Shown here piece by piece: positions 9,652-63,696 of a DNA stretch of 64,000 bases. Made by a program: the position numbers and the translations under genes. Below the pieces are notes generated by a model. The model did not search any database. It was given only the letters and a program-made list of their open reading frames with translations, and was not told where the DNA came from. The stretch is from Phaeosaccion multiseriatum (Eukaryota; Protista; Ochrophyta, other classes). Each line of letters begins with the position of its first letter. Positions within the stretch are counted from its first letter, which is position 1. The DNA is taken from assembly GCA_965112735.1 (NCBI GenBank), contig OZ218963.1:1488001-1552000 (forward strand), given 5' to 3'.

Positions 9652-9688
9652 CGATGCCCCGCCGCTACAGAGTCGGTAGCAGCGGGGC
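9649..9688 (+). promoter_or_regulatory. Putative stop-codon readthrough signal (UGA-CGA plus 13-bp stem-loop)
   Basis: The gag stop is in frame with pol. Stem 9656-9668/9676-9688. An equivalent signal is in B at 41858-41897. Confidence 0.75.
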
Positions 9689-26755: not shown

Positions 26756-27109
26756 AAGGAAAATATTTTGACCGAGCATTTTCCTTCATCCCAAATGGCC
26801 TCTTCTCGTCCCCCGTTACCCGTACAACTTTCTATACCGACTAAGGACATCTTGATCTTTCATTTTGTACGAGAGATGCATGGGTCATCTCCGACGGGAT
26901 CACCTGCTTTTGGGCCTCCAAAGTTTAAGACCCACTTTAGTGGGTCTTGTAGACCCACTTTTGTGGGTCTTCAATTTGGTTTAGGGATATAGCGCTCCCT
27001 CACTTTCTTCATGAGAGATTGTGCCTTCTCCAACTCTGTCCAGGCTGCCAATTCCTCTGTCAATACCTCCAGTTCTTTCGCGTAAGCAGCTAACTGCCGC
27101 TCCGATTCG

Positions 27110-27326
27110 TGTTGCCTTTATATGCGCAATACTAATCTAAGTGGGTAGTGTAGCCTATATAAAGGCAACAAAAATCTCTACCACTCTCGGGTTCAATTCC
27201 CATCTGAGCATTCTAAGCTACTATTTTCCTGTGGACTTGAGGCAACCATAGGACTTCAACAACTTCTTGGATGGGTATCGATACCCTTGAATGGGCGATA
27301 TTTTTGTTGCCTTTATGTAGGCTACA
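27110..27326. mobile_element. H3 element (partly deleted)
   Basis: TGTTGCC..GGCTACA ends; TSD TTCG. Confidence 0.85.
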
Positions 27327-27435
27327 TTCGCTTTCATTGTCAGGAACGGCTGTCTCTCCAACCGTTCCTTCTTTCAGCTCGGAAGAGAAGGTTTGCACCT
27401 TTGACTTGTAGCTCAAACAAATCAGAGAGCTGCTG

Positions 27436-27813
27436 TGTTAGAAGTCGTGCTTTTGCTAGACTGGTACCTCCCGGTCTGAATTAGACTGGTACCTACCCTC
27501 TGAATTCAGACCGGGAGGTACCAGTCTAGCAAAAGCACGAGTTCTAACAAGCCCATTGCTAGAAGTCGACCCCCCCCCCCCCCACCGCACATAGTGGAGA
27601 GAAGTAATTCGCAGTCTGGGAATCAGACTAATGGGTCAGCAAGCCAGCAAGCCGGTACCAGTTTTCGCCGAAAAACACGCTTTTCTCACAAGCTACAGCC
27701 AGGGTTCGAACTCGCAATGGCCTTGTTAGAAGTCGTGCTTTTGCTAGACTGGTACCTACCCTCTGAATTCAGACCGGGTAGGTACCAGTCTAGCAAAAGC
27801 ACGACTTCTAACA
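27436..27813. mobile_element. H2 element, copy 2 (hairpin-Y-hairpin)
   Basis: Hairpins at 27436-27549 (internally duplicated) and 27724-27813 flank Y. Confidence 0.88.
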
Positions 27814-27962
27814 CCGTGCTTTTCGAAGTATCCCTTGTACTCCTGATGCATGAGGCTGGAGCAGTGCTCATGGAAGGCTTGGTCTTGAAGGGAGTCCCCG
27901 GAGAGGAGAGGAGACCTCCAAGTTTTTGACGCTTCTTCAAGCAAGGAGGACACAGGGCTTTA

Positions 27963-28770: not shown

Positions 28771-29437
28771 GGGAAAGGGTGGAGCGCCGCTTAAAAAAGA
28801 GTTTGTACAACGTTACGGATACGAGAAGTTGGGATGGCTGGCACTCCATCTCACCTTTTCTTCCCCTCCCTTCTTGTGTAATTCTAAACTTCGGTAAAGC
28901 TCTCGAGCCAACGAAGGTGCCCACAACGCTCTCTTCCCTTGCTCGCGCTCCTAAGTGCCCACAACTCGCTTCCCTTCCTCCCCCTCTCAATTCAGGTCCT
29001 AAAAAGTGTAGCTACGTATGTTACGCTTTGTATCTTTGCGCGACTACACGCTGATTGTGGCCGATGAAAGCCATACCCATTTTATATATGAATACATGGA
29101 CGCAATGGTGAGTAGCAAGACGTGTGGTAGATTGTCCTGCCTGAGGGTTTCCGGTCACACATTCTGGGGTATAATAAGAATGTCGGTTTCCTAGGCACGC
29201 CCCGAGGGGGATCAACGGCTCTGGCGTTTCACCCTCCTCTTCGTGGGCACAAGCTTTGCATCAGCAAGTAGTAGAGATATATTATCAATACGGACACTGA
29301 CGCCCCACCATAGGCGCAGCATATACTTAGTCCAAACCCCGCAACGTTTCTACTATCTTAGCTTAGCACAGAACTAGTTCTCGCTTTAGAAAAGCTTTGG
29401 AGAAGGATTTTCTCGGACCGATTGGAGGAGCGGCATC

Positions 29438-31968: not shown

Positions 31969-32202
31969 TGTCGAAACTACCGACAGCTAGCCTCAAAGCC
32001 AAGCTAGAGCAGAGCAGAAGCTGAAGCAAGCACCCGGAAGCCAGCCCACACGCAGGCTGCGCTTCCTTTCTTTTATTACTGATTTACCGTCTAGTTGGCC
32101 CGTTTTCCGGCCGTTACACTACTGATTGGGTCCCCAAGGGACCCCAACTAGGCCACTTCTAACATCCCCCTCACTACACCCCCGCCTCTTCCGCCAGCTC
32201 CC

Positions 32203-41200: not shown

Positions 41201-41572
41201 GCTGCTGCTGCTCCGGCGGCGGCAGCTGCTCGACTGCGGAAGCCGCTGGCGCAGCCTCCTGGTGCGCGCCCTCCACGACTACCTCTACTGCACGCTGCGC
41301 CTGCTGCTGTACCGCCGTCATCGCCGTGTGCTCACCAGCAACGACTGCATCCGGGCCGTCAGTGCCCCGCGACTGCTCGACCACAGAGCGTACCACAGGA
41401 CCCGGCTGCTGCGCTAGCTGCCGCTCCGGCTGCTGGCGCTGCGGCTGCGGCAGCTGCCGCTCCGACGCTGGCAGCTGCTCGACCGCGGACGGCGCAGGCA
41501 CAGCCTCTCTGTGCGCACCCTCCACGACTGCCTCTACGACACGGCGCTGCTGCTGCTGCTGCTGCTGCTGCA

Positions 41573-41604
<32 letters not shown>

Positions 41605-41894
41605 TGTTGCCGTTGTAGCCGAGCACGTTTGAGTCTGTCGCCACACCACATGTCACTCCGATAAACTCTGATGGCAGGTGACTCCTGCTCTACACGACTA
41701 GCCTGACCGCTCCTACGCTGAGCGTCGGCATGGGGCAAAGGTGGGTCTGACAAACAAGATAGGTGCGAAGTACATTCATTATCTTCTACACTGCTCTTGC
41801 CCGCCCTCCCCCCCTGTTCCCCCACGCCGACGCTATCCTCACGCGCTGCGGTCGTGGGCCCCAGGGCTGCTGGCCAAGCAGCCCCGGGGCACCG
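32203..41894 (-). CDS. pol: Pol of B: Q-rich spacer, Cys motif, protease, dUTPase-like, helical domain, RT, RNase H, DEDDy exonuclease, unknown domain, integrase, chromodomain
   Basis: ORFs 39927-41825 and 32203-40110 join if the G7 run at ~40050-40056 is G8; homolog D is continuous there. Motifs: ALMDSG; FVDD; STDAS; MDSEW/HHWSHD/YAFAD; HTDAIAGGH..CLAC; GADVAG, VSDQGSQF, NGQVER; WDGPY; EYNVRW..TWEW. Confidence 0.93.
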
Positions 41895-42195
41895 TCAGCC
41901 TTCGAACTTGAACCCGTCCTGCGCCGCCAGAGTGCCCGCCACCATTGCTGCTACGGCTTCAGACATGTCGGACTCCTGGTGCTGCGCTCTGACCGCCTGC
42001 CGCCGCTGCACGCGACTCACAATGCCGAGCAGCTCCTCACGCGTAGCGGGGATGGCGTTGCATTCTATCCATCCATGGCCGGCGCGGCGACAAGTCATGC
42101 AGTTAAATGGGGCATTGCCGTTGCCACGCTGCTTCACCGAGCCGTGGAACAGCAAGGGCCGCTGCTGGGTGGGCGTGAGCCGCGGCTGCTGCGCC

Positions 42196-42230
<35 letters not shown>

Positions 42231-44103
42231 TGCATTCACCCCCACCTCCTGTGACGGCTGATGGTCCAGATGCTGCTCCACCGAATTCACGGCCACTTCC
42301 AGATGCTGCTCCACCGCATTCACGGCCACTCCCCCGCGCGGAGTGCGCAGACCACCACCACCACCACCACGGGCCCGCGTAGCCCCACCAGTAGAAGAGA
42401 GCGTAAGTGGGCTACCAGCCTGGAGCACCCGAGTCGCGGAAGGAAATGCCTTCTGGAAGGCGGCGTAGAAATCACTCCACGAGGGAGTCGCCGACTCCCA
42501 GCGCAGCCAGAAGTTGGTCATGCCGTCAGTTAATGGCAACGAGCCGTGACGAAGCCGAATCTCGACCTCTGGCCGCAGCACCGCCAGCAGGCCCGTAACC
42601 AAGGCTTGCTCATCCGTGGCCTGCCCCGTCACCTGCGCCAGACACAGAGAGAGTTCCGCCAGCTTGGTGAGCAGCCTGGCGAGCGCCTGGTTCACCTCGG
42701 CAGGAACGGTGGACGCTTCCAGAGGCTTGGCCTCCCGCACCAACGTCTGGACAAGCTGCTGGAGGCCGTCTCGCGCAACAGGAACGCCGAAGAGACGCAA
42801 CAGACACCTCGCGAGCAATTGGAACTGTGCACTCTCCGTCTCCCACTCCAATGTGACGTGCTGGTCGCCCTCCATCCACGACGCACCCTTCTGAGCCTCC
42901 GCCAGGACAGTGGCCCGATCCACTGCACCCAAGTCGGCCAGCACTCGCTGCTCCATCACCCGCCCTTGGCCCGGAAGCACGGACCCAGTAGAAGTCAAGA
43001 TCTCCTGTCCTTGCAGAATGCTCACCCAGTTGTACATGCGTGCGAGCACCACAGCACGAGGATGAGGCTGTCCAGCCGCATCGAATAGAGAGGGAAGTTT
43101 CTGCTCCTGGAGCACACGGATAGCACCCACGGGCAGCGTGATCGTCTGCACCGTATGACGGGCGGGCGCCTGCAGCACATCCAGGGCCTGCTGCCGTGCC
43201 CGCTCCCGCTCCCGTTCCATGTCCCGCTGTAGCATATCCTTAACCTGCTGCTGCAGCACCTCTACCCCCCCGGTGCGGCATCCTTAACCTGCTGGAGCTG
43301 CGCCGCTAACAGCTCCCGCTGCAACGTCTCCACCTCCAACTGGGCAGCACCCTCAGGCGGCCGCTTCGGCGGCGGCTGCGCCGCCATCTGTCGCTGCAGC
43401 TCCGCCGCCACCTGCTGCTGCAGCTCCACCGCAAACTCCCGCTGCTGCTCCGCCCCCGCGAGAGCCGCAGCACCTCCAGTTCCCGCTGGAGGGCCGCCGT
43501 CTCCGCCTTGCTCTCCCGCAGTTGGGCCGCCATGAGCTGCGCAGCTTGGTGCTGCGTCAGCATCTCAAGCCCCTCCTGGAGAACCCGCGTGTCCTCCTGC
43601 TCCGGTGTCTTCTCTCCCTCCGCTGGCTGATCCACCACCCGAGCCCCGCCAGACGCACCAACAAGAGGGACCAAGGGCGTGCCAACCACATCCCACACCG
43701 TGCTCTCCTCCTGGCCCACCGACTCTGCATCCCCCGAGTGGAAGGAAACCTCCGACGCCGCCACCGTCAGCGGCCTCACCCCAGCAGCAGGAGGGGAAGC
43801 GGCAGCAGCCGTAATCGCAGACCCCTCAAAAAAAGAGGGCGACTCCAGGGACTCCTCCCCCCGACGCAACGCCGCCCGCACACGGTCCACAGCCCCAGGG
43901 CTGGCAGTGACCTCCGCAGGAGGAGCAGCAGCTTCCGATACCACAGACCCCACGTCCGCAGCACCACCATCAGCTCCACCGCCCTCAGCGTCACTCGTAG
44001 CGCCCTCCGCCGATGAAAGACTCAGGAAGTCCCCCTCCTCAGCCCTGGCCACCCTAGCAGCGTGGAACCGCAGGAAGTCCATCCCCGCCTCAGCCAGTGC
44101 CAC
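41895..44103 (-). CDS. gag: Gag of B (two apparent 1-nt frameshifts in G runs near 43455 and 43268)
   Basis: CCHC CMTCRRAGHGWIEC; triplicated V.VN[AS]VEQ spacer; the stop is in frame with pol. Confidence 0.82.
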
Positions 44104-44424
44104 CCTAGCAAGCCCAAAGCTGTCTACGGCCTAAAGCTGGGCAGCTGGAAGCAAAGCTCAAGCCAACACAATAAATCAGCCTCAAAGCTGGATCTCAGAC
44201 CTGTGTCTTTCGGGTCTTCCGGGTTGTCGAAACTACCGACAGCTAGCCTCAAAGCCAAGCTAGAGCAGAGCAGAAGCTGAAGCAAGCACCCGGAAGCCAG
44301 CCCACACGCAGGCTGCGCTTCCTTTCTTTTATTACTGATTTACCGTCTAGTTGGCCCGTTTTCCGGCCGTTACACTACTGATTGGGTCCCCAAGGGACCC
44401 CAACTAGGCCACATCTAACACGCC

Positions 44425-47063
44425 TCCACAGCGCCAACATCAAGATAGGATTGAGCTCCTTCCGCTTCGGCAAAGAGCTTAAGTTCCTAGGCCGCGTGCA
44501 CGACCGACGCGGCACACGACATGACCCCGCCAGAGTGCAGGGCCTGACCAGTCTCGCGGCCCCAGAGACGGCTGGAGATTTGATGACTTTCTTCTGCAGC
44601 CTGCAGTGGTTTCATCGATACATCAAGGACTTCGCTAAGCTAGTGGGTCCTTTGAACGCGCTGTTGAACAAAGCCCTCGGGCAGGCTAACGCTAAGCCTC
44701 ATCAGCACAAGCGCTCCAAGGCAGTGGCCAAGACGATTCCATTGGCTTCTGTGGGGTGGGACACAGAGCACGACGACGCTTTCTTCCAGATCAAGCGCGT
44801 TCTTGCACAGAACACGGTGCTGTCGCACCCAGACCCAACCAAACTGGCACTGGTATTCCCAGATGCTAGTGACCTCTACTGGGGATGTATGATTACATAC
44901 ATAGACCCCAAAGAGCTGTGCCTTCCGGTACATGAGATGAACCACATCCCGGTGGCCTTCGGCTCAGGCGCCTTTGAAGGCGCAGAGCTGAAGCGTGCCA
45001 CCATCGACAAGGAAGGAGACGCGACACTCCGAGGCTTGATCCAGAACGAGTACGCTTTGGTCGGTGCACAGAAAGTGCACATCTTTTGCGACCATCGCAA
45101 CTTGGCGTTCATGATGAGCAACGACAGCAAGTACCCTGGCATGACTAAGCCTATGAGGGACAGGCTGCAGCGTCAGGCCGTGCGCCTTCAGAGCTTTGAC
45201 TATGTCATTGTCCACTTCCCTGGTCATCTCCATGATTGGGCCGACCCCATTAGCAGGCGGTACACGCACCCGGTGAGCCTCACCCCTAGTGTGCTCGCCT
45301 TGGGCAAGTTTGGGCCCATGCAAGTGTTTGACACTATGTGTGACGACTTCACTTGGCCCTCCACAACTGAGATTGCCAGTCTGCAGGCCGACGCTCTTCA
45401 GGAGCTCCAGCAGGCTAGCAAGGAGGTGGGAGAGAACGGGCGCCGCCTGCTCCTCTCATCAGTTGGCGACGACGGGTTGATTCGAGCGTGCCATCCGACG
45501 AGCAACCCCGCTGACAGCACCCGCATTTGGATTCCCTCGGTGGGAGCCAAGGCGGAAGACATGCACCTGAGGCTGTGTGTGACTGGCCATCAGGGTATGA
45601 TGGGCCATCAGGGAGAGACAAACACCTTGAGTGCTATTAAGGAGAAGTTCATCTGGCAGTCGCTAGACAAGGACGTGCGCAGCCTCGTTCAGAACTGTCT
45701 CCACTGCCTCACCAACGGCAAGGGCGAGAGAGTGCCTCGCCCCCTGCTAGCTCAATGGCACGCCACTGGACCCCAGCAACTCATCTGGTTTGACTTCGTC
45801 AAGATTGGCGATGGAGTCATATGGGCAGAGTCCCCAGAAGGGTTCATGAAGCTTCAGGTCAAGCAAGTGCTGTGCATCTTTGATGATATTTCATCATTGT
45901 CAATGTATGAGCCATGTTTGGAAGCTACTGCACGAGTGTGTGCACGCGGTCTGTTGCGCTGGTTCGCACAGCATGGCGTAGTGCCCAGGTGGCAGAGTGA
46001 CCGAGGCAGTCATTTCCTAAATGAGGTGATACGTGAGTTAAGTCAGCTCTTGCGGTGCAACCACCACTTTGTGGTGGCACACAACCCATACAGTCGAGGA
46101 TTGGGCGAGCGTGGTGTACAGACACTGCAGAAGATCATGAGATCAATGATGTCTGAACTACGGCAGCCGCCCGAGACATGGCCGCAGCTACTGCCAGTGA
46201 TGGAGGCTGTTGAGAACAGCTCCAACAAGAGCAGTCGGTCTAACTTGTCTCCCATCCAGCTGCACAGTGGTCACGTACCACAGCGGCCTCTCGACACGAT
46301 TTTGATCCACGACGCGGATCGAATGCAAAAGGTTCGGCTACTGCAGCTGACCCCGGCGCAGAGAGACACCCTTGCGACACAACTCCATCAGAGGAAGGAG
46401 GGGCAGCGTGCCGAGGCGGCGCGCCAACTGACTACCCTCCGCGATCACAAGCGCGATGGCATCAACCAGAGGTTGATGAGTGGCAGACGTGGTGCAGAGC
46501 ATCGTCTGGACTTGGCCAGAGCTACGCAGCTCAACAGCGAGACCCTGTTTCAGGTCGGAGTCTACGTACTCGTTGCAACAGTAGGGCCTACAAGCAAGAT
46601 ACTAGGCAAGTGGCATGGGCCCTGCCGAGTGCTTGAAGCCCTTGAGCAACACGTGTACAAGGTGGAGGAGCTTGTGGGCAAGAAGCGTACCTATGAGGTA
46701 CACATCAGCCGACTCCGCTACTACTGCGGTGCTCACGTTAACGTCACTACCGACGTACTTCAACAGATTTCGTATAACACCCAAGACTTTGTGGTGGAGG
46801 CCTTTGAAGGCCTCGTTAAGCACGCAGATGCTTCATGGCACGTCATTGTTAAGTGGCGTGGCTTTGACGCCCTCGAGAATAGCGAGGAGCCCATCGAGGC
46901 GCTGCACGAAGATACTCCACGTTTACTGGAGACCTACCCGCAGCACCATCAGGACAAGCAGTTGATCAGCGCAGTCCGAGCCTATCTGCGCAAGACTACG
47001 ACGCGATCGGCTACTAAGCCGCCGCGCTCCGCGCGCACACGAAAGTGGACACAAACTAGATAG
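44425..47063 (+). pseudogene. pol: A2 RT-end, RNase H, integrase, chromodomain
   Basis: Nearly identical to A1 3077-5715. Confidence 0.92.
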
Positions 47064-47972
47064 ACACACTTACTTCCCAGTCGGCTCGAACTGTCGCTTG
47101 GGGGTAGTGTGGTAGATTGTCCTGCCTGAGGGTTTCCGGTCACACATTCTGGGGTATAATAAGAATGTCGGTTTCCTAGGCACGCCCCGAGGGGGATCAA
47201 CGGCTCTGGCGTTTCACCCTCCTCTTTGTGGGCACAAGCTTTGCATCAGCAAGTAGTAGAGATATATTATCAATACGGACACTGACGCCCCACCATAGGC
47301 GCAGCATATACTTAGTCCAAACCCCTTAACGTTTCTACTATCTTAGCTTAGCACAGACGAGATTTACTTCTTCTGCTATTGGAGTCGCCTCCTTGCTCGC
47401 TCTGCCGCTGCTTCACAAACTCTTCGCCCCCCCCCCGTCTCCCCCTCTCCCCCTCTCCCCCTCTCCCCCTCTGTACATTCCAGCATCAAGCTCGAGTGTA
47501 TCATTGAGAGGTGTGCTGTCTGGGTCTAGGTCGATATCGATACTTGCCCGGGGTTAAAATAGGGCTATGTCAGTATTGGTGTCAGGACCTCTTTTCTGGA
47601 ATGTCCTTTGGACTTCCACTTTCCTTTCTTTTATTCAACAAGGTACCCCCCCCCCCCCCGCTCGACGAGCAGGCTACAAGATTATAATAGGAGGCTTCAC
47701 ACATTGGCACAGAGCCTGTGGAGTATTCTCTAAACCCCTTGTAGAGCTTGTGGGCACAGCATAGTTTAAACTTAGCTTTACTAGAGGAAGAAAAGCTTGG
47801 AGCGGGTGTCAAGCAGTGCGGAGCTGTAGTCAAGCTCGCAGGCGAGACGCTAGCGCTCAGTACTCGAAGGAGAGCGGGCAAGCGCCCTGTGCGGACTCGC
47901 CGAGGAGGCTGGAGAACGCAGGCGGTGCGCTAGCGCTCACCGGAGAGGCAAGTAAATCATGTCCTCGGAAGC

Positions 47973-48262
47973 TGTTGCCTTTGCCTAGATAGGCTACACT
48001 ACCCACTTAGATTAATATTGCGCAATATTAATCTAAGTGGGTAGTGTAGCCTATCTAAAGGCAACAAAGACTTCTCCCACTCTCGGGTTCGATTCTCATC
48101 TGAGCTCTCTCTGCTACTATTTTCCTGTGGACTTGAGGTACCCATAGGACTTCTATATATTTTCCTGTGGACTTGGTGTACCCATAGGACTTCTACATCT
48201 TCTTGGATGGGTATTGATACCCTTGAATGGGCGATATTTTTGTTGCCTTTAGATAGGCTACA
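47973..48262. mobile_element. H3 element inserted in C
   Basis: Full hairpin, internal Z and a terminal 22-bp box; TSD AAGC. Confidence 0.9.
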
Positions 48263-50589
48263 AAGCGGACGCTCGTAATCGGGTTGCGGACGTGATGGTG
48301 CGGCCCTTGACCAACCCAGAGAGCCAGCGGGCGGCTCTAGAGTGGGTTCGCAACGACAGCGGGAGCAGCAGCGTCAGCAACAACAACAGCAGCCTGTCAA
48401 GGATTCGCAGCAGCAGAGGGGAACCAAACGGGGTCTTGATGAGGCCGAGGCACCTGGTACTGAGGAGCCGGCCAAATCTATCCAATGCTGGGCTTGCCGC
48501 CTTGACAACAGGCAGGGAGATATCTCCCACAGGATGAATGACTGCCCTCATGGCTACAGTGAAGAGCACAAGAAGAAGGCAGTAGACAAGTTTGCCAGAC
48601 GGCGTGCGAGGAAGAGGGGCGGTGGCAGGCATGGCAGGGTCCAGGCGCCTACCCTTCCTCCTCTGGCACCCGTGGGGGCAGACGGCAAGAGATTTGCCGA
48701 GGTGAAGGTACCGCAGAGTGAGTCGGCGGCTGAGGATGTCCTCGCCCTTGTGTCGATTCAGCCTGAATACCGAGCCGGCTTTGGAGAGAAGAGCAGCCAG
48801 GCCAAGCAGGTCAATGGAAGTGTACAATTTCTCACGACGCTTGATGAGGCTTGCGACTTCAGTCTCCTCATTTCCAGTGACCAAGTTGAGGCACTAGTTC
48901 AGCAGGCAGGACTCTCCCGGGAGCGGGCAGTAGTCGCCACTGAGCCAACCAACGCGGTCTTTCTTCGAGGAGAGTTGCCTTCTTTGAGCAAAGTTGTTCA
49001 GGGACTCAACCTCACTTTGAAAATGGCACACGGTGATATCCAAACGAAGGAGTTGGGCCCCGAGTATGGTTGCGCTTGGATATACGAGGCGGGGGACGCC
49101 CCACTTGTTAATCAGCGAATCATCATTGGCCGACCTTTTTTGGAGAAGCTGCAGGTGCCTAGCAGCCGTGCTACTCTTGAGGAGAGGGCACTGGCACAGA
49201 AGAGAGCAGAGTTGGCAGAGGCAGCCACTCTCAACCCGCAGGGTGTTGAGGCGGTGCGTGTGAGTCGTATCACAGCGCAGACCGCGAGTCATGCCCTGGC
49301 GGCATCTAATGAGGCCCGGCAGTCGACAGAGGAGGTAGCGTTTGATGAGGTATTTCCATCCGCTCCTCAAGGTCCACAGCTGGATGCCCAATATTGTAAT
49401 ATAGACAGTCAAGATTACTTTGCGCCTCATCCTGTTGATGCGCCTGTGAAGGCACAGCCGCCAACAGTGGAAGAGTTGCGCGTGACCCTTGGTGCCCGTG
49501 TTGATGAAGCAGTCAAGAATGGGACCTGGCCACTTGAGTATCGAGAGCCCTTGTTAGATGCTCTCCTGTCTAAACCCAATGTGTGGAGGAACAAGCTCCT
49601 CCTCACAGATGGACCAGCTAGGGTCCCCCCCATGGTAAATGAGTTTACCACTTCTGAGCCTGTCTCTCTGGCGGCCATCAGACAGCCTGGCGCAAAGGGT
49701 AAGTTCGTCAAGACGTTTGGTCAAGAGTTGATCGATAACGGTCTGCGCTACGACAACCCTCAGAGTACGAGCAGTAGTCCTGGCTTTGCGGTCCCAAAGC
49801 CAGTGGTGGCGGGGCAGCCCTTGCTTGGCCTATCGATTGTGTGTTGATTTGAGAGCGATCAATGCAATCACACTCCCGGCCAAGTGGTATATCCCCAACC
49901 TACTCGATGATGCGCAGTGCTTGAGAGGCTGTAAGAATTTTTTGGCGCTGGATTTGCGAGACTATTATTGGTAGCTATTGATGCGTGCTCGTGATGCGGT
50001 ACGTTTCACCATCATTACGCCCTACCATAAGATGACTCCAAGGCGAGTACTGCAGGGCAGCAAGAATGCAGCGTACTACGCTCAGTGGGTGATCAGCGAT
50101 ACGTTTCGCGAGGAGATCGGCAAGACTATGGTCAATTATATGGACAATTTGGCACCGTGTGCGAAGCAGCCTCAGCAGTTGGTGATTCAAGTCACTGACT
50201 TACTGGCCAAGCTGGATGAGCGAGAAGAACTTGAAAGTCAAGCCAACTTCTCTGGAGCTTACGGATAGCATGCATTTCTGCGGCAGGGTCTACAATAAGG
50301 ATGGCTTTCGTCAAGACATGAGTCGCGTGCAGGGCTTGCTGGAGCTGCAGCGACCTCAGACAGCAGCAGATTTGCAATTTTTCATCTGTGCGATGGGTTG
50401 GTGCCGAGACTTTATGCTCAACTACGCGCAGGAAATTCAGCCTTTGGTGGATCTTCTCAACTTGGCCTTCAGCAAAGTCAAGGTGCGGCGTGGTAGGCAC
50501 CCGCGTTCTCGCAGTGCCGCGCGCACAGTTTCATTGGAGGCAGAACACCCATGGTCCTGTAGCACGCAGTGGCAACGTCAATGTCATTC

Positions 50590-52313
50590 AGCAAGTGCAG
50601 CCCATGGCCGTGTATGACTCAATGGCGGAGGACTTTGGTTTCCCACAACTTGAGGAGATTCAGCAGGCTCAGCAGGCCGCTATTGCCCCAACTTCTTTCA
50701 CTCAGATGGAGGCTACCCTGCAAAAGTCTGGCATTCATCTGGAGGCGGATACTGACGGTCTTCTTCGTGCCCCAGCTTCAGATGGTACACGTCGTGTTTG
50801 GCTTCCAACCGAGTCACTCCAGGCCCGAGCTATAGTAGTGGCACATCAAGGCAGCTGTGGTCATCGCGGCAGTACTTCTACGCTTACTGCCCTCTCTCAG
50901 CGATTCGTTTGGCCCTCTATGAAGGCAGATGTGGAGAGGCTATGCAACTTATGCCTCCACTGTCTATCCAATGGTTCTGGAGAGAGAGTGCCACGACCTT
51001 TGCTGGGTCAGATCCACGCAGACAGGCCTAACCAGCTGATCTACATGGACTGGGTTGATGTAGGGCCCGGACAGCAGCACGTCCTCTCAGCTGAAGGCAC
51101 GCTCACTGTTGACGTCAATTACGTGTTGGTGGTGACTGACGACTTTTCGCTTGAGGCCCAATACAGTGCAGCACCTGAGCCCACAGCAGAGGCAACAGCC
51201 AAAGCGCTCATGCAGTGGTTCAGTGTGTTTGGGGTGGTGCCCCGCTGGGCAAGCGATAGAGGTTCTCATTTCCTCAACCGAGTCATGGAGCTTCTACGAG
51301 GTTGGTTGCGGTGCGACCACCACTTTGTCGTGGCTCACAACCCTTACTCTCGTGGACTAGGGGAGAAAGGTGTGAGGGATTTTCTGAGTATTGTGCGGCC
51401 TGTTCTCAGCGAGTTTCGACTGCCTACCACGGAGTGGCCTCAGCTATTGCCGGTGGTAGAGGCGGCGCACAATTCTACTCCGAGCCCTTCACGCGACGGT
51501 CTCTCTCCTATTGAGTTGCACACGAACAACAAGCCTGTGCACCCTCTGGACGCGATTTTGGTGAACGACGCTGATCTTATCAAGGAGATGCGAGTATGCA
51601 AGCTACCGGAGGGCATGTTTAAGGCGATTAGAGAGGAGTCTCATCGCCAGCAGCAGGCAGTCCATCAGCGCATTTACGACCATCTGCAGGCAGTGCGTGA
51701 GAAGAAGCGTGTCTTCCACAACGATGCGCTGCGAGGGCGTAAAGGTGCGCAACACCGGAAGGAGACGGACTTGACGCGCAAGCTTGGTCACACTGGCGTC
51801 TTCGTTCCTGGTATCTTTGTCAATATGGCCAATGTTTCGGCCCATAGCAAGCTGCGTGGAGTGTGGAGTGGGCCCTACAGAGTGATCTGTGAGGTGAGCC
51901 CCATGGTATATGAAGTGGAGGAGCTGATTGGCAAGAAGAGGCGCTTCACTGCTCATGCTTCACGGCTACGCTACTATTGTGATGCGAGTGTTGGTGTCAG
52001 CACTGACGCACTCGCCCAGATCCAGTACGACACTCCCTTGTGGACTGTGGAGAGACTTGTCGACCTCGTCGAGGATGAGGGTGGCGACTTTCTCGTCCAA
52101 GTTCAGTGGGTTGGCTTTGAGCCGGAGGAGAACAGCATGGAGCCCATCCGTACGCTTGCGGCTGATGTGCCTGTCCTTTTGGAGACCTTTCTTAAGAACT
52201 TCCCAGACCAGGAGCTTGTCAGTCGAGCTCGGGAGTTTCTGTCTCGAGGCTCAGGACCGCCGACGAAGAAGGTACGCAAGAGAGCTGCGCGTTCACGGCA
52301 TTGCTGTACGTAA
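50590..52313 (+). pseudogene. pol: Integrase-chromodomain region of C (still open)
   Basis: HQGSCGH..CLHC, YMDW, ASDRGSHF, NPYSRGLGEK, WSGPYRV, VQWVGFEPEENSMEP. Confidence 0.88.
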
Positions 52314-52648
52314 AGCTTAGTCTTGAGGGTAGTCCCTCCCGAGCTCGCCTTGGGGGCAGTGTGCTGTCTGGGTCTAGGTCGACATCGATACTTGCCCGGG
52401 GTTAAAATAGGGCTATGTCAGTATTGGTGACCTCTTTTCTGGAATGTCCTTTGGACTTCCACTTTCCTTTCTTTTATTCAACAAGGTACCTCGCTCGACG
52501 AGCAGGCTACAAGATTATAATAGGAGGCTTCACACATTGGCACAGAGCCTGTGGAGTATTATCTAAACCCCTTGTAGAGCTTGTGGGCACAGCATAGAGG
52601 AGCAAGAGCTGGATTGGCAAGTCAATCGCCCCCTTCGCTCTCCTCTGC

Positions 52649-53079: not shown

Positions 53080-53383
53080 TGTAAAAGCGCTGAAGTCGCT
53101 TAGACAAGTGGTAACACTCGATATATTATACGGGATGGAACCCGTTTGCAAGCCCTGCTGCTAGGCTCTCTCTCTCTCCTTACCAAGATCACCTTTTCTG
53201 ACGTCCCCTTGTTACGATATAAGGCATCCCAATATGCCTTCAGTATTATCCAAACGTTCGGATAATACTGAAGGCATATTGAGATGCCTTATATCGTAAC
53301 ACCCCTTGCCACTCAGAATCTACGTAATATAGGACACGCCGACCATTGACTTATGGTCCGTCTCACTCTGAGGCCTTCCAACA
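53080..53383 (-). mobile_element. Isolated D-family LTR carrying an H1 palindrome (53210-53301, TSD CCCCT)
   Basis: Reverse-complement homolog of 7598-7797; its own flanks show no TSD. Confidence 0.85.
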
Positions 53384-53819: not shown

Positions 53820-56800
53820 TTAGTGTCCGTCCTCAATCATGCATGGCTTACAGTAGTAGTCAAAATCGCCTTCCACAAAACCCTTGCTGTCGCAAAACTC
53901 GACGGTGCACATGTGGTGCACGAGGTTTCCACACGCTCTTTCGGATGGGCAGAGGAACAGCTTGACTTGCGAGGGCTTAGTACAGCCATACGAGCATGTG
54001 AAGGCCATGTCTCCCTCTCTCAAGCCGCCCAACGACGGCGCTGCTGACGCGGCAGCAGCGGCAGTAGCGGCCGCAGCGGCCGCATCAGAGGCAGCAGCAG
54101 AAGCAGCATCAGAAGCAGTACCAGTACCAGTACGCTGTTTTTTTTGGGCCCCCCTTCCCCTACCCCTTCCTCCTCGTCCTCCTCCGGCTCCGCCTCCTCC
54201 TGTTGCAGCAGCAGCAGCAGCAGCATTGCTGCTGCCACCTCCCTCCTCGTCGTCCTCTGCACCGCTATCACCTCCATCCCCCTCCTTCGACTCGTCTGCA
54301 CCAGTGCCACTTTCCTTCGCCCTCGCCCGCTTCGCCCGTTTTTTCGCGTCCGCCTGCTGCGCGCTCCATAAATTATACACGGTGGTCCACACCAGCTGAT
54401 TGAAGCGGCGCTTGTGAGAATCAGAACGAGACTTGATGTCAAAGGCGTCTTTGACTGCGTCAAACATGCTTCGCGCTTCTTCAAGCGTCGGCTTGTCCTT
54501 CCAGAGCCCCTTTTCTTTCGCCGCGGATTCAATCGCACCCATCAAACAGCAAAATTTTGACATCCTTCGCTTCTCCGCCCTCCCCTGCACGTCTGCTGTC
54601 GTGAATTCTCGAAGGCGAGGAGTGCCTGTCATCCAAGCATCCCAAGCAGCGCGCACAGTGAAGCTAGGGACCTCAAAGTGCTCGGGAAGGGTATGCCACC
54701 GGCCGTTGTAGAGATACAGAGGTGGCTGATCTGCACCTGCACAAGAAGAAGAAGAGGGCGGGGCGCTGCTCGAACCCTCACCAAGGCCCAGAGTGCCTGC
54801 CTGGTGAGCCGCGAGAAGGTCGCTGAGCCCACTCTTAGAAAAGGCTGCGTCGAGGGTCGTCTGCAGGGCCCTGCTCACACCCAGACTGGTGACAGTGCCA
54901 GAGGCCTGTGCATTCTCCTCCAGAACGTCACGGATCAGCGTCTCCAAGTCGACCTTGATCGTCTGGCCCAACACCTCAAGCTTGCCGCCTAGAGAGGCCA
55001 CGCTGTCCGCCACGACTTGGAATTGCCTCAGCTGCACGACGTGGGGAGGAATCCCGGTTGCAGAAATCTCGTCCGTCTCGTCCGGATACTTCAGCACGAC
55101 ATGCTCTGAAAGGTCCGCCAGCAACCTTTGATCTCGGAAGAGCTGTGTCGTGAAAAGAGGGTGATTCTCCTGAAGAGTGTTGCGCAGAAAGCCGGCGTGG
55201 TACACCACACTGGCAAGACAGAATTCAGCCACCTTCCTCAATCTCAGCGGCACGTCCCTGAAGCAGCTCACAATGGCTCCCGCGAGCACGTCTTCAATGC
55301 CCTCCTTCGCTGTGCCGTCCACCTTGAGGCGCTGAAAAAAGGGAGGAAGCAATGCAAACTCCTTCGCTGAGATGTTCGCGCCGGAGGCAGCCCGGCCCAC
55401 ATACTGATCTGCTGCATTGATGGGGTTGAAGTAGATGCCCTGCACGCCGGGAAGAGACCATCCCATTCGAAGTTGCACAGCAATTGGGTTGGGAGCAGCG
55501 GATGAGCCGCTTGTGACATGCGAGGCAGCGCCCTTGCGCCCAGAATGAGTGCCGAGGTCCTCTGGAGTCAGCCCCATGCCTTCCAAAATGGACGAGTTCG
55601 CCGCCGCCGTACGTCTGAGGAAGCCGCAATACCTATCGTACTGATTGTTGCCAGCGAACAGCGCGTTCTTCTCAAAACCAAAGCTCAGGAGGTAAACACC
55701 AAGCGCGAGGACGGGGCAGATCTCCGGCATGATTGGATTCGCGTAGACGTGGCGAGGATGTCGGGCCTTCTCTCCCAGCTGGTCGCCCTTTTGCTTCCCA
55801 AAATAGACGCAGAGCGCGTCCCCCTTCCACTCGAGATGATCGAGACAAATCTCCACACAGTTGGTGGCGCGGCACATCAGATTCCAGGAGAGAACGAGGA
55901 AGGGGTGGCCAAAGGCGCCCTGTCTGTGCCCGTTCTCACAGACTGCCGAGCTCAGCATTGCTGCGATGTACACAAGCGAAGGAAACAGTGGCAACCAAAG
56001 ACGGCGTCAGGGCTAGGAAGTGAGTGGGGGGCATTCAATGCATCAGCCACTTGTCTCCACCCACTCCACTAGTTTCCACTGTCCACTGACTCCACACAGC
56101 TGGGAATTTACCTTTGGCAAGAGCGCGGTAGAGAGCGAACGGCATGGGAGCCTTCCCTTCTCTGACTTCGACATTTCCCTCCTGCTTCTCTCCTGCGATC
56201 GTCCTCTTCAGCCCCTTGGTGAGCGTCGCAAGGTCGCTTTGCAATTTGCGGTGCTGTTCCTCCTGATGGTAGTCTCTGTACAGATTGAAGAGTGCAGAGC
56301 GTTTCGACTGTGCACCGGCCTTGGATAAGCCCTTCGGCCCCTTCTTGACTTCAAGCAGCCACCCGAAGAACGCGTCGGCTGTCAGCAGATGGAACAGCAA
56401 AGGGTGCGGCGCCCGAGGTGCTTGGATCAAGTGTGCCTTCACCCGCTTCGTCCACTGCGCCTCAGCCTTCCTCTTGGCCTTTGCTTGGGCTTTCGCTGCT
56501 CTCGACACCTCAGCCGGCGTCTGCTGTGCCGCTGCAGTGGCACCACCCGCTCCGCCAGGTGCGGCGGCTGCTGCGGCTGCTGCTGCTCTCCTCTGTGCTT
56601 CCTCCTCTTCCCCATCTTCCCCGTCTTCCTCCTCTTCCCCTTCCGGTGGAGCAAATGCTGTCCTGAAGTCAGGGTCCAGAAGCTCCGGGTGCTTGCGGAA
56701 GAGGTATCGGATCAGCATGGTGGAGGCGCATGCATATCCACTTCTCGAGCGTGGGGCGATGGTGTTGTTTCGGAGGTTCTGAATCTGCTGCTGCTCTGCA

Positions 56801-56868
56801 GTAAGCGGTGCTTCTTCCCCCTCTGCTGCTGGTGCTTCCGGAACCGTAGCAACAGCGACGTCAGCCAT
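53820..56868 (-). CDS. Crypton-type tyrosine recombinase, two exons (56868-56112, 55960-53820), 965 aa, C-terminal PHD-like finger
   Basis: GT-AG intron 56111-55961 joins the two ORFs in frame. Catalytic set R (WNLMCR), K (KQKGDQ), HxxR (GTHSGRKG), W (RMGW), Y (VQGIY). Also HVYANP..ICP and LLPPFF motifs typical of CryptonS. Confidence 0.88.
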
Positions 56869-57649: not shown

Positions 57650-60303
57650 ATGGACGCCTCAGCTCCGTCCGGAGATGACGACGAGGAGGATGAAAAGTAT
57701 GGATGGATGGTGGGAGAGGATGAGGAAACGCGCATCAGGCGTCTGATGATGCGGAACCGTTATCCTTTTATCTCCTACGCCCAAGGCGGATTCTGGTATT
57801 CGGAAGAGGACGAACAGACGAGGCGCCAAGAGGACGAACAGACGATGCGCCGGCTCAAGATGTTTTATCGGGAGGAGAAGGCGTGCTGGCTTCAGGTTTG
57901 GGAATGGAGCCGGATACTTGACTGGAGCAGCGTGACAGTGAATGGGTGGACGTACACTCTTTCAGACTTCAGGTATCGGAGTGAGCAGCATGAGAAGGAG
58001 CTGCGCCGACGGAAATCCGAAGAAGAGGCTCGGACGAAGGACGAGGCCGAGCAGGAACGACAGCGAAGGAAACAATGGGAACGAGAGATGGCTTCAGACA
58101 TCACCTACTACGTCCAGGGCTATACCTATTGGCAATACAGCACAGAAGCGGATCAGCGGCGCAGACGGGAAGGAAGAAAGCCGTTTGGGATTGAGCTTTG
58201 TGAGGAGCTTGAGCGCAGAGGATATGATAGCAGCAGTGATGTGACAGTGAACGGATGGTGCCAGTCATTCGCATGCTTTAGGGGCTATGCGGAGCAGGAA
58301 AAGGAGAGGTTGCGTCAGCAGACACCAGAGGAGGAAGAAGCAAAATTGCGTCAGTCGTGGCCAGAGCAGTCTGATGGGCCGCGGGCTGCCATGCATTGGC
58401 AGCAGCAGCAGTCAGAGTATCAACCGCCGCTACAACAACCATACTCTCCTCAAGGTCCTCAGTGGCAACCTCGGGCCGCTCAGCATTGGCAACAACACAA
58501 ACGGACACTCGACACGGGCCCAACCCAGCAGCAGATGGAAGAGACGACGATGCTTCAGCAGCCCAGTGAGCGAAGAGGGTCTTCCCATCACGGACACTGC
58601 AGCGACAGTGGCAGCTCATCATCCAGCAGAGCCGTCCGTGACAGTCACGCTTGTAGAGGACGGCAGTCGAGGGATGAGCAGCACTCTCTGCCTCAGCTTC
58701 AGCATACAGAGAGCTCTCAATCGCGACAGCAAGAAAGGAAGGAGCAAGAACAGAAGCGTCGTAGACTGCTGGAAATGGTGCTGCAGATGAAGGAAAACGC
58801 TATGAAGCGCCTTGACTCCATGGAGAGTTCCATGAAGAGGATACTGCAAACAACAGCCAGACACCAGCAACTTTCTCCCCACCGGCAGTCCTCTCCTCTT
58901 TCTCAGCGTATGGAGCGGACTCCGTCACCGTCAAGAGGACGCACCCAACGGTGGCGATCTCCACAGCCTTTGCAGCTTCAGCCACAGCAGCAGCAGCATC
59001 AGCAGCTGCAGGAGGAGAAGGAGAAGGTGTGTTACGTTTGGATAATACTGAAGGCATATTGGGATGCCTTATATCGTAACAAAAGAGGGGTTCGAGTCCT
59101 ACTTGAGGAAAGAGAAAAAAAATGATATTTCCCGAGGGGGGTTACCAGAGGGTCGTACCCTAGGGAAAAAGCACGGAAAACTGGTGGGGATGAGGGACAG
59201 TATTTAGGGTCGAACGTTTCGGTAGCACCAACCCCCCGGTGTGAAGGTAGGGCTCACCGAACCCACCTTTTGTTACGATATAAGGCATCCCAATATGCCT
59301 TCAGTATTATCCAAACGTTTGGATAATACTGAAGGCATATTGGGATGCCTTATATCGTAACAAGGTGAGACAGCAGCAACAGCGCTCACAGCGCCCACAA
59401 CAACAGCCGACCAGTGGCGGGCCACAGCAGTGCCCGCAGCCCTGTCAGAAGCAGCTGCTGCAGCGGAAACAACAGCACTCTCGGCCATTGTCGACTCGTC
59501 CGTCGCGACAAGAGCAAGCACCGCAGCAGCAGAGACTGGAGCAAGACCAGAGGCGTGGGGGGCAGATCGAGGTGCTGGTGAAGCGGGAGCAACTGCAATT
59601 GGAGGAAGAGAGAGTGAAGGAAGAGCAGCTGCAGCTGGGGGGAAAACTGGAGGAATCTGAGCAGCTGCAACTGGAGAAAGAGATGGTGAAGCAGCAGCTG
59701 CAGTTGGAGGATGAGAAGGTGAAACAACAGTTGCAGCTTGAGGAGCTGAGGTCTCAGCAGCTGTTGCATGAGAAAGAGGAGAAGGTCAAACAGCAGTTGC
59801 AGCTGGAGGAAGAGGAGAAGGCGCAGCGGCTCAGTAGGGAGCCAGAGAAGACACTCGCCCAACAGTGACTGCACGAGAATGAGCAGCAAGAGACGAAGAG
59901 TAGATTGCTGGAAGATGTGAAGTGTAAAAGTGAGTGGCAACTGCATCAGACAGACATGCAGGAGAAAGAAAGGCAGCTGTATGAGGAGGTGGAGGAGCGT
60001 GTTAGACAATTGCAAGAGGTGAAGCTTGAGGAGGGGCAACAGCTGCGGTTGGGGAAGGAGGAGTCAACACTGCAGTTGTCTCCGCAGGTGGTGCAGCAGA
60101 AACGCCTTCAGCGAGAGACGGAGTTGCAGGCCTCTCTGCAGCAGGATGTGGAGGAAGAGGAGGGCAAGGAAAGCTCCGATGAGTGGGAGGAGCTTCACTT
60201 GTCTTTGGGCTTGCCGATGGTGGACGCGAACGGGCCTCAGCGCTTGGGTCAGCTGTACCCTGGGCGGCTAGCTCCAGTTGGCATTGGTACGCGGGGAGAC
60301 TAG
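57650..60303 (+). pseudogene. Coiled-coil Q/E-rich protein of F, with a duplicated Trp-rich module
   Basis: 57425-59125, 59365-59868 and 59905-60303 form one frame after removing H1, with a single internal TGA at 59866-59868. Confidence 0.6.
59030..59362. mobile_element. Complete H1 element (deleted hairpin, ~190-bp core, full hairpin)
   Basis: TSD AGGTG; right hairpin 59271-59362 identical to 13827-13918; B-box GGTTCGAGTCC at 59089-59099. Confidence 0.92.
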
Positions 60304-61433: not shown

Positions 61434-61725
61434 TGTTAGAAGTCGTGCTTTTGCTAGACTGGTACCTCCCGGTCTGAAGAACCCTGGCTGTAGCTTGTGA
61501 AAAAAGCGTGTTTTTCGGCGAAAACTGGTACCGGCTTGCTGGCTTGCTGACCCATTAGTCTGATTCCCAGACTGCGAGTTACTTCTCTCCACTATGTGCG
61601 GTGGGGGGGGGGGGTTCGTCTTCTAGCAATGGGCTTGTTAGAAGTCGTGCTTTTGCTAGACTGGTACCTACCCGGTCTGAATTCAGAGGGTAGGTACCAG
61701 TCTAGCAAAAGCACGACTTCTAACA
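61434..61725. mobile_element. H2 element, copy 3 (inverted)
   Basis: Partial hairpin from 61434, reversed Y, full hairpin 61636-61725. Confidence 0.85.
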
Positions 61726-63134: not shown

Positions 63135-63238
63135 AAAAAAATACGCTTTATTCACAAGCGACAGCCAGGATTCGAACTCGCAATAGTCTTGTTAGAAGTC
63201 GTACTTTTGCTAGACTGATACCTCCCGACTATTCTAAC
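63135..63238. mobile_element. Diverged H2 fragment with a collapsed hairpin
   Basis: GGATTCGAACTCGC..TGTTAGAAGTCGTACTTTTGCTAG..TTCTAACA. Confidence 0.7.
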
Positions 63239-63471
63239 AGGCGGCCTAAGACTTAGGCGGGGGCCGGAGGCCCGCGGCCTAGGGCAGGAGACGCCAACTA
63301 GGCGCAGGTCCAGGGCGGGAATATGCTCATATGCCCCTGGGCTGGCCCGGAACCCGCCCGTGTCTTCCCTTTCCTTTTTTTTTTTTAACACTCGATTTCG
63401 TAAGGATCGCCCAAATCGCCCGATTTCCCCCCCAATTTTTTTTGGCACATACTCGACCCCTGACACGCTAT

Positions 63472-63696
63472 TGTAAAGAGTCACGTTCCTCTCCACCTAG
63501 GATAGGAGTAGCCGCATGGACAAGGTAACAGCAACCCCAAAGCCAGCCTGGCAGCCAGCCTTGTCTCTATTAGCTTTATCCGTGAGCCATCCTAAACGAC
63601 CAACCTGCTGGGAGGTGAGTGAGAAACGGGCCACGCACCGTTTCTCACCGTATTTGCCTGGGCCTGGGCCATTTGGCATAATACTGACTTTCAACA
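63472..63696 (-). mobile_element. Solo LTR of family E
   Basis: Near-identical to 12905-13128; TSD CTAT. Confidence 0.93.

Follow-up and report, generated by a model that had tools for sequence, protein, structure and literature searches.

Miniature TG..CA elements with palindromic ends in Phaeosaccion multiseriatum may be TRIM-like parasites of resident Gypsy retrotransposons

Four families of miniature sequences, H1-H4, lie in a 64,000-nt stretch of Phaeosaccion multiseriatum DNA (hereafter the window) and end in long palindromes, which raises the question of what kind of mobile element they represent. A preliminary description of the window had claimed that the termini are palindromes of ~90 bp, and for all four families we found the hairpins in the sequence as described. 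The two-arm pattern of H2 and H4 has 4 matches in the window against 0.00 in 100 shuffles; the expectation of such hairpins arising by chance is nil. The inverted arms measure 44-47 nt each, and the units, which are 290-380 bp long and contain no ORFs, have TGT..ACA termini with the terminal pentamers TGTTA (H1, H2), TGTAA (H4) and TGTTG or TGTAG (H3). A folded single strand of an element consists of two terminal hairpins and a closed core, with z-scores of -19 for the H2 element and -17 for the H1 element.

H1-H4 are true insertions. Target duplications were readable for six events in total, three in H1 and three in H3, and both their lengths (5 bp in H1, 4 bp in H3) and their sequences (Table 1) agree with those given previously. 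The hairpins also host further elements, with H3 nested inside H2 copy 1 and a 730-bp element inside H4. Hairpin patterns taken from the window, exact or gapped, had no match in the metagenome contigs, viral contigs and prokaryote genomes scanned, and we found no matching description in the literature on palindromic LTRs, hairpin TRIMs, self-priming non-autonomous elements and Dictyostelium 'thug' elements.

Table 1. Positions of H1-H4, nested insertions and relevant Gypsy features in the window.
Feature	Positions	Strand	Details
H1, sole complete copy in window	59030-59362	.	Target duplication AGGTG at 59025-59029 and 59363-59367; left hairpin remnant 59030-59081, core 59082-59270, right hairpin 59271-59362
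H1 solo hairpin	13827-13918	.	92 nt; target duplication ACGGG at 13822-13826 and 13919-13923
H1 solo hairpin	53210-53301	.	Target duplication CCCCT at 53205-53209 and 53302-53306
H2 copy 1	26180-26755	+	Left hairpin 26180-26268, core 26269-26441
Left flank of H2 copy 1	26089-26179	.	Reverse-complemented copy at 27814-27904, directly right of H2 copy 2
H2 copy 2	27436-27813	+	Left hairpin 27436-27549, core 27550-27723, right hairpin 27724-27813
H2 copy 3	61434-61725	-	Inverted; half hairpin 61434-61478, core, full hairpin 61636-61725
H2 remnant	63137-63239	+	3' part of core and 50-nt hairpin (63190-63239)
H3 copy	26470-26739	+	Nested in right hairpin of H2 copy 1; target duplication ACTG; begins with inverted 22-nt box
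H3 copy	27110-27326	+	Target duplication TTCG at 27106-27109 and 27327-27330; left arm of hairpin partly deleted
H3 copy	47973-48262	+	Hairpin 47973-48066, core, right-end 22-nt box 48241-48262; target duplication AAGC
H3 partial hairpin	7430-7496	+	Box and most of inner palindrome; at repeat breakpoint
H4 array	23386-24776	.	Three hairpins; two unrelated TG..CA insertions nested
H4 hairpin 1	23386-23452 and 24183-24210		Two pieces; followed by core 24211-24389
H4 hairpin 2	24390-24480		91 nt; followed by inverted core 24481-24719
H4 hairpin 3	24720-24776		Centre flipped, right arm absent
Unrelated TG..CA element, 730 bp	23453-24182	+	Nested in H4 hairpin 1; target duplication CAGC
TG..CA micro-element, 57 bp	24597-24653	+	In right H4 core copy only; target duplication TTAC/TTTC
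Gypsy C	31969-44420	-	196-bp LTRs; 4-bp duplication CGCC; candidate integrase source
E2 LTR	18811-19023	+	Further copies 19889-20101 and 22374-22586; last ~19 nt match H2 hairpin end

All three H1 loci listed earlier (13827, 53210 and 59030) are real; the first two are solo hairpins, not full elements, and with their target duplications they bear out the claim that such solos exist. In the complete copy the left hairpin is reduced to a 52-nt remnant by a 40-nt internal deletion that kept the first 6-7 nt, and the right hairpin is a perfect palindrome of 92 nt, 100% identical to the solo at 13827. That solo pairs in 46 of 46 positions, has a single-strand DNA fold of -50.4 kcal/mol and has a protein match to a paralogous Gypsy pol on either side, the two being collinear. 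The solo at 53210 carries two substitutions acquired after insertion, and its empty site is represented by the uninterrupted paralogous repeat 7598-7797. Two H1 loci lie around a tyrosine-recombinase gene; that they are the ends of one large element was rejected on their separate target duplications.

For H2, the positions 26180, 27436 and 61434 proved to be copies, the last ending at 61725, and the fourth position listed, 63135, corresponds to a remnant whose hairpin has lost its right arm save the last ~10 nt. The palindromes measure 89-90 nt (left hairpin of copy 1, right hairpin of copy 2 and full hairpin of copy 3). The right hairpin of copy 1 was split by the H3 insertion into 26442-26469 and 26744-26755 and is truncated past its centre, and the left hairpin of copy 2 is aberrant, with a flipped half fused to a normal hairpin (114 nt). 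Positions 26089-26281 are 95.4% identical to 27904-27711. Target duplications were unreadable in every H2 copy.

In the 94-nt H3 hairpin a palindrome of 48 nt is enclosed by a 22-nt box and its inverted copy, and the right end has the box alone. These unequal ends (94-nt hairpin versus 22-nt box) are kept in three independent insertions, and the terminal inverted repeat comprises only 8 bp and is imperfect. It may be that H3 is simply a 290-bp LTR. The H4 sequence, previously listed as a family, is real but proved to be an array of three hairpins with nested insertions. The array consists of one unit and an inverted copy of the sort that fold-back priming at hairpin 2 should produce, and both the order of its parts and the orientations of its centres are exactly those predicted for such priming. 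A 324-nt palindrome (24274-24596, 95.7%) is centred on hairpin 2. The right end of the 57-bp micro-element resembles the end of the Gypsy A LTR. No target duplication was readable for H4.

Hairpin arms co-vary. The homology that had been noted between H2 and H4 arms was upheld, with 7 fixed differences within the outer 34 nt, and at these stem differences the family's own state was found in 10 of 10 H2 arms and 5 of 5 H4 arms. A slight off-centre asymmetry marks the hairpin centre. In H2 and in the H4 unit it points the same way in both terminal hairpins, and the two families also agree in how it is oriented relative to the core. Conservation of this asymmetry shows that an H2 element, like the H4 unit, carries its two hairpins as direct copies; the statement that a terminus is at once a direct and an inverted repeat therefore holds for the arms and not for these whole hairpins. 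H1 is uninformative on orientation because its hairpin is perfectly symmetric.

Inside the hairpins, stretches of 12-25 nt form inverted repeats between the two ends and carry a G-run and a TTCGA motif. These subterminal repeats are 65-80% alike, whereas the adjoining arms are perfect. Such inverted repeats with a common motif are present in H1, H2 and H4, and all four families have, 9-19 nt inward of the hairpins, a GGTTCGA-type motif, which we take to resemble the B box of a polymerase III promoter. The order of hairpin, subterminal repeat, core, subterminal repeat and hairpin is conserved in three families (H1, H2, H4), and the cores of the four families have motif islands in common and no alignable homology. 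Two independent hairpin insertions around a random core were rejected as an origin, the subterminal architecture being common to H1, H2 and H4 and absent beside solos.

The earlier proposal of integration by a retroviral-type DDE integrase, Gypsy or Ginger-like, stands in that the elements are mobile and non-coding, with TGT..ACA ends and 4-5-bp duplications, and in that Gypsy A, C and E of the window make 4-bp duplications. The pol of Gypsy C contains RT, RNase H, 3'-5' exonuclease and integrase domains, and its LTR start, in its own sense, matches the H2 hairpin start at 11 of 12 nt. At its end, H2 agrees with the E2 LTR end in ~15 of 19 nt, and the two share an 11-nt exact word, a score reached in 0 of 300 shuffles. 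Derivation of a hairpin arm by fold-back copying from the R-U5 part of a Gypsy LTR was rejected, as the similarity is limited to the last ~19 nt. The LTRs of Gypsy A, C and E are 196-249 bp long and their pairs are 99.5-100% identical, and therefore the machinery was recently active. Five integrase domains are present in the window, all in RT-containing Gypsy pol genes or degenerate copies. The best pol relative is 60% identical, and named matches are from green algae at ~34% identity. Judging from the words in their sequences, resident Gypsy C, E and E2 appear to be self-priming: a word adjoining the LTR on its downstream side and another 69-72 nt before the LTR end are complementary, and where the families differ the changes compensate each other. 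This clade also carries a 3'-5' exonuclease domain. Element D (47512-52597) was considered as Ginger-like and rejected, as it is a degenerate Gypsy related to A.

We tentatively read H1-H4 as non-coding elements that depend on an integrase and parasitise the resident Gypsy clade C/E/E2 in a TRIM-like way, with the use of a Gypsy integrase, an RNA route and the mode of priming of reverse transcription all inferred. The enzyme inserting linear double-stranded copies of the element would be a retroviral-type DDE integrase, and most likely Gypsy C/E/E2 supplies it. The terminal repeat would then be a miniature LTR of ~90 bp, made of two inverted integrase-recognised ends around a short asymmetric centre, and recombination between the two terminal repeats of one element, as direct copies, would leave a solo hairpin comparable to a solo LTR. 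Complementarity of the arms may be upheld by repeated copying or correction of one arm from the other, through gene conversion within the hairpin or templated synthesis. The hairpins would also cause secondary damage, namely deletions that spare the extreme ends and fold-back inverted duplications, and might attract further insertions. H1 has the attributes by which TRIMs are operationally recognised (PMC4717578): it is shorter than 1.5 kb, encodes no proteins and is represented by one complete copy and differently duplicated solos. The 290-380 bp units likewise have the size, the lack of proteins and the direct repeats, with direct orientation seen in H2 and the H4 unit.

Several observations count against the TRIM-like reading. 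No word complementary to a tRNA 3' end follows the left hairpin, although the window offers no tRNA gene for this comparison, and no polypurine tract directly precedes the right hairpin; the sequence before the right hairpin of H1 is pyrimidine-rich, and H2 and H4 have G-runs 22-28 nt away, in one orientation only. A self-priming word pair like that of C, E and E2 is absent from the H elements in the required position. The inverted subterminal symmetry suits a DNA transposon; a primer-binding site and a polypurine tract have distinct roles, which such symmetry does not fit. The unequal ends of H3 would be made equal by canonical LTR replication; those of H1 and H2 could have arisen after insertion. 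The H1 duplications are 5 bp, versus 4 bp for every LTR element measured in the window, and an LTR of ~90 bp leaves little space for a promoter and a repeat (R) region.

Among the alternatives, a Ginger-like DNA transposon (MITE) remains a serious rival, even if we consider it unlikely. The 46-nt arms would be the terminal inverted repeats and the transposase would be encoded elsewhere in the genome; a solo hairpin would be a minimal element of two inverted repeats with nothing between them, and hairpin-core-hairpin would move as DNA. In Ginger1 and Ginger2 (TDD-4, TDD-5) the termini read TGTNR, as in Gypsy LTRs, the terminal inverted repeats span 40-270 bp and the duplications measure 4 or 5 bp (PMC2836005), a description that the H elements fit. 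The motif-bearing subterminal inverted repeats of H1, H2 and H4, the unequal, rearranged ends passed on in H3, the absence of primer-binding and polypurine signals and the occurrence of very small TG..CA insertions (57 bp; 92-bp solos) also agree with it. However, the window holds no RT-less integrase gene, resident Gypsy LTRs have termini that match those of H2, and the hairpin centres of H2 and H4 are direct, not inverted. Furthermore, Ginger1 duplicates 4 bp, CCGG/CCGT, and Ginger2 targets AT-rich sites with duplications of 4 bp, TDD-4/5 having 5 bp (PMC2836005). The H3 duplications ACTG, TTCG and AAGC differ from the former and the GC-rich H1 targets from the latter. Over six events, the H1 and H3 duplications fit Ginger in length and neither Ginger1 nor Ginger2 in sequence. 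It is improbable, to a greater degree, that the whole 290-380 bp unit is the (mostly solo) LTR of absent full-length retrotransposons, with internal hairpins and with solo hairpins as deletion products. Unit lengths do equal those of ordinary LTRs here, and H3 has an imperfect terminal inverted repeat like normal LTRs and a 4-bp duplication like the resident Gypsies. Against this, no pair of H units encloses a gag-pol or coding region in the 64-kb window, neighbouring H3 copies carry different duplications, and a five-part architecture conserved in three families with unrelated cores would be odd for U3, R and U5.

Replication through hairpin-ended DNA is more doubtful still. A hairpin together with its adjoining subterminal repeat could, with very low probability, be the end module of a new kind of element that excises or replicates as hairpin-capped linear DNA and is then inserted by a Gypsy-type integrase, leaving solos at donor sites; hairpin-end replication and retroviral integration would be combined in one element. 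We rate slightly lower the proposal that H elements replicate or excise as hairpin-ended linear DNA, by fold-back synthesis or cruciform resolution, and are then integrated, solos being the remains of donor sites. Such an intermediate is consistent with the contrast between perfect arms and diverged subterminal repeats, with the single hairpin common to both halves of the H4 inverted dimer, with the flipped half-hairpin joined to the left end of H2 copy 2 and with the folding of single strands into two terminal hairpins and a closed core. Perfect arms, however, are what gene conversion of the ordinary kind within a palindrome would give. In H2 and the H4 unit the centre keeps one orientation with respect to the core instead of a random one, and the window contains neither a nickase gene nor a Rep-like ORF. 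Together with H2, 91 nt of flank were duplicated in inverted form, so that this rearrangement, at least, took place in the chromosome. Fold-back chimeric long reads typically yield palindromes and inverted dimers, but we give almost no credence to the palindromes being assembly artefacts from such reads or from collapsed repeats. The hairpins occur at independent loci with distinct target duplications and an empty paralogue, one copy bears post-insertion mutations, nested elements within hairpins have their own duplications and the inverted copies are just 95-97% identical.

If the TRIM-like reading holds, an integrase-dependent parasite can pare its LTR down to the integrase-binding end in two inverted copies and can dispense with recognisable primer-binding and polypurine signals. 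The boundary between TRIMs and Ginger-type MITEs would then be blurred, which bears on the origin of integrase-derived DNA transposons from LTR elements. Arms that co-vary perfectly offer a clean, naturally occurring case of concerted evolution within a palindrome. The hairpins are also hot spots for deletions and fold-back duplications and an assembly hazard and, if transcribed, would be ready-made double-stranded RNA precursors.

Among known systems, a ribozyme-bearing element (retrozyme) was rejected, with no hammerhead and no Rfam match at the gathering threshold in the window; permissive Rfam settings gave merely sub-threshold generic hairpin (miRNA-precursor) matches. A tRNA-derived element was unsupported, as ARAGORN found 0 tRNA genes and Rfam no tRNA or SINE in the window. 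Parvovirus or AAV-type terminal repeats consist of a hairpin and a short non-palindromic stretch inverted between the ends. In architecture, the H elements resemble these repeats and Foldback elements in their terminal palindrome, inverted subterminal stretch and palindrome-sharing inverted dimers. Unlike either, they have clean TG..CA ends, target duplications, a fixed centre, no replication gene and a length of 0.3 kb. The flip and flop centres of a rolling-hairpin replicon were not seen, the orientation being fixed in all informative H2 hairpins and the H4 unit; the single flipped H4 hairpin agrees with the flipped centre predicted for a fold-back copy. In Tf1-type self-priming Gypsy elements, the inverted repeat is renewed mechanically in each cycle. 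Resident C, E and E2 resemble these elements in their complementary word pair, and such renewal is a possible precedent for arm-to-arm copying in H hairpins, but the H elements have no positioned word pair and a loopless hairpin leaves nothing to copy.

Like Ginger elements and MITEs, the H elements have TGTNR ends and inverted arms and subterminal regions; unlike Ginger1 and Ginger2, they carry the inverted repeat twice per end, head to head, and their hairpin centres are direct. TRIMs are known from green and red algae (PMC4717578). Compared with TRIMs, the H repeats differ in being near-perfect palindromes of ~90 bp, accompanied by neither a primer-binding site nor a polypurine tract, and the regions inside them are inverted copies of each other. 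The ends of H3 are unequal, and the shared-repeat array of H4 is head-to-head, not head-to-tail. As in TRIMs, including the tandemly arrayed TRIMs and Cassandra, the H elements are non-coding, shorter than 1.5 kb and bounded by terminal direct repeats around a 170-190-bp core. They also share with TRIMs the TG..CA ends, 4-5-bp duplications, solo repeats, repeat-sharing arrays and ends like those of resident autonomous LTR elements. The initial judgement that they fit neither TRIM nor MITE cleanly was borne out. Because their ends match those of the neighbouring Gypsy elements, we regard H1-H4 as an unusual variant of miniature LTR elements and not as a wholly new class.

The approximately 90-bp palindromes of the preliminary description are real, with hairpins of 92 nt in H1 and 89-94 nt in H2, H3 and H4. 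The H1 hairpins at 13827-13918 and 59271-59362 are perfect, mutually identical palindromes, and that at 53210-53301 carries two substitutions; such hairpins cannot have arisen by chance. We recovered the 5-bp target-site duplications reported around H1 copies (ACGGG, CCCCT, AGGTG) and the 4-bp duplications around H3 copies (ACTG, TTCG, AAGC), while no H2 copy in the window had a readable duplication. At one H1 solo hairpin (a hairpin with a duplication, lacking core and partner), the paralogous site elsewhere in the window is uninterrupted, and the other has on either side a protein match to a paralogous Gypsy pol, the two matches being collinear. Additionally, an H3 copy with its own duplication is nested within an H2 hairpin. 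Together, the duplications, the uninterrupted paralogue, the collinear flanking matches and the nested insertions indicate that H1-H4 are insertions and not local oddities.

Several copies required revision. Of the H1 copies listed earlier, only 59030-59362 is complete, and even there the left hairpin has an internal 40-nt deletion, keeping the first 6-7 nt. An H2 entry at 63135 proved to be a remnant, in whose hairpin only the last ~10 nt of the right arm persist, and the end of H2 copy 3 was corrected to 61725. H3 is made up, in order, of a 22-nt box, a 48-nt palindrome, a second box in inverted orientation, the core and a final box. The box alone is nearly palindromic, with TGT at its start and ACA at its end, and one H3 copy starts with the inverted box.

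H2 and H4 hairpins differ at 7 positions in the outer 34 nt. Because the family-specific state was present in all arms compared (10/10 for H2 and 5/5 for H4, left and right, at both element ends), every change is compensated across the stem. A 2-nt bulge a few bases off centre in H2, and a small internal loop at the corresponding point in H4, make every hairpin directional. The two hairpins of one element share their direction, and this direction with respect to the core is alike in the two families, so the terminal repeats of H2 and H4 are direct, like LTRs. The 12-25 nt just inside paired hairpins are inverted repeats of one another, only 65-80% alike, and when H2 was folded as a single strand, two terminal hairpins formed and the subterminal repeats closed off the core. 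In all four families the subterminal regions contain a G-run and then TTCGA, 9-19 nt from the hairpin; this motif looks B-box-like (polymerase III box consensus), which is only a lead. The cores are otherwise unrelated. Split hairpins were compared piece by piece, unjoined, and collections were scanned with short patterns (15-31 nt) taken from the window, one being an IUPAC motif, degenerate at a single base in each arm, that fits both H2 and H4. Hairpins 27449-27537 and 59269-59364 matched many miRNA-precursor models, well under thresholds. If transcribed, the hairpins would yield long perfect double-stranded RNA.

In the H4 array, hairpin 1 is followed by a core, hairpin 2 by the inverted core, and hairpin 3, with a flipped centre, comes last. 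The array resembles a fold-back product: this order would arise if a strand with hairpin 2 at its end folded back and copied itself. At the H2 locus, 91 nt flanking the pair are duplicated and inverted (26089-26179 and 27814-27904, 95% identity), so such rearrangements happen in the chromosome too. These flanks and the aberrant left hairpin of H2 copy 2 together point to palindrome-driven chromosomal rearrangement. The 730-bp element nested in H4 carries a second, internal copy of its last 67 bp (23608-23674), a pattern suggestive of a small LTR-type element whose right repeat is truncated. The 57-bp insertion resembles the Gypsy A LTR end at its right end and could be a minimal solo repeat. 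Two of about 12 small insertions with readable duplications fell inside hairpins, which occupy ~2% of the window (roughly p = 0.03), a weak hint of targeting.

Coordinates of elements and other features in the window
Feature	Position (strand)	Remarks
Gypsy A	215-6010	both ORFs open; LTRs 100% identical; duplication TCTG
Gypsy A'	29123-47355	interrupted by nested element C
Gypsy C	31969-44420 (-)	196-bp LTRs; duplication CGCC
Gypsy E and E2	between 11646 and 22586	fragments and LTRs
E/E2 solo LTR	63472-63696	duplication CTAT
Gypsy D	47512-52597	degenerate relative of A; duplication length ambiguous (4 or 5 bp)
Word pairs, presumed self-priming type (C, E, E2)	44225-44420 (-), 12905-13128 (-), 18811-19023, 19889-20101	
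H4 array	23386-24776	
Non-coding TG..CA element, 730 bp	23453-24182	nested in H4 hairpin; duplication CAGC
TG..CA micro-insertion, 57 bp	24597-24653	4-bp duplication, one mismatch
H2 copy 2	27436-27813	
H2 remnant	63137-63239	
GC-rich short-period repeats	8350-10800, 14300-15300	within long ORFs without Pfam match
113-bp tandem array	12308-12835	
C or G homopolymer runs, 13-14 nt	26290-26304, 27570-27583, 7545-7570, 47655-47668	

The window is eukaryotic and rich in repeats (GC 0.49-0.68), with no ordinary host genes recognised in it and several Gypsy LTR retrotransposons. No broken gene was seen in A. In A', gag has at least one frameshift and pol is interrupted by one nested element; E pol contains one nested insertion, and its 3' part, integrase included, has been lost; D pol has three frame changes and one internal deletion, with one H3 nested in D outside the ORFs. 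The pol of C (32203-40110, minus strand) and E (13948-18894, plus strand) contains a DEDD-type 3'-5' exonuclease domain (Pfam DNA_pol_A_exo1, E-values of 1e-20 and 6e-15) after RNase H; C retains integrase, and the domain lies between the two. This combination looks rare, the domain being listed in 0/74 homologues found. Two adjacent minus-strand ORFs (724 and 277 aa, 53820-56868) look like a Crypton-type tyrosine recombinase. They have ~80 eukaryotic homologues (Phytophthora, a chytrid, a cryptophyte, a diatom), labelled "integrase" by some sources; the upstream ORF weakly matches a phage-integrase SAM-like domain, and Pfam at default settings gave no match. The homopolymer runs recur in unrelated repeats (H2 core, D LTR, an intergenic stretch).

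We lean tentatively towards H elements being TRIM-like and spreading by an LTR-type route via RNA. It is favoured by integrase-type ends and duplications, by ends shared with resident LTRs, by the direct orientation of the hairpins, by solo forms, by Gypsy machinery that was active recently, and by the features by which TRIMs are operationally recognised. That they are instead DNA MITEs using a Ginger-like route is less likely but a serious alternative: missing priming signals, subterminal regions in inverted orientation, the transmission of unequal ends by H3, and an H1 duplication of 5 bp versus 4 bp in the measured Gypsies speak for DNA and against RNA. However, no RT-less integrase gene was found in the window, the target sequences do not match those of Ginger elements, and the hairpin centres are direct.

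We doubt still more that whole H units are LTRs of elements outside the window, a reading most plausible for H3. Perfect arms and the dimer make a hairpin replicon attractive, but the fixed centre orientation and the evidence for rearrangement in the chromosome render it improbable. An assembly artefact is hardly credible given the insertion evidence and the 95-97% identity of inverted copies. Literature searches found no description of the H1-H4 families, which may be undescribed.

The start of the Gypsy C LTR, in the element's own sense, equals the H2 hairpin start at 11/12 nt, and the E2 LTR agrees with the end of the H2 hairpin over its final ~19 nt, including an exact 11-mer (score reached by 0/300 shuffles). 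Because the E2 likeness ends there, we ruled out that the H2 arm was copied from a larger LTR segment. H elements contain neither a complement of a tRNA end, nor a purine tract at the polypurine-tract position, nor a word pair of the C, E and E2 kind. In those three Gypsies, the LTR is immediately followed by a 9-11-nt word whose complementary partner is located 69-72 nt before the LTR end, and the pairs differ by family in a compensating way. We take this layout to be a self-priming signature, as in Tf1-type elements.
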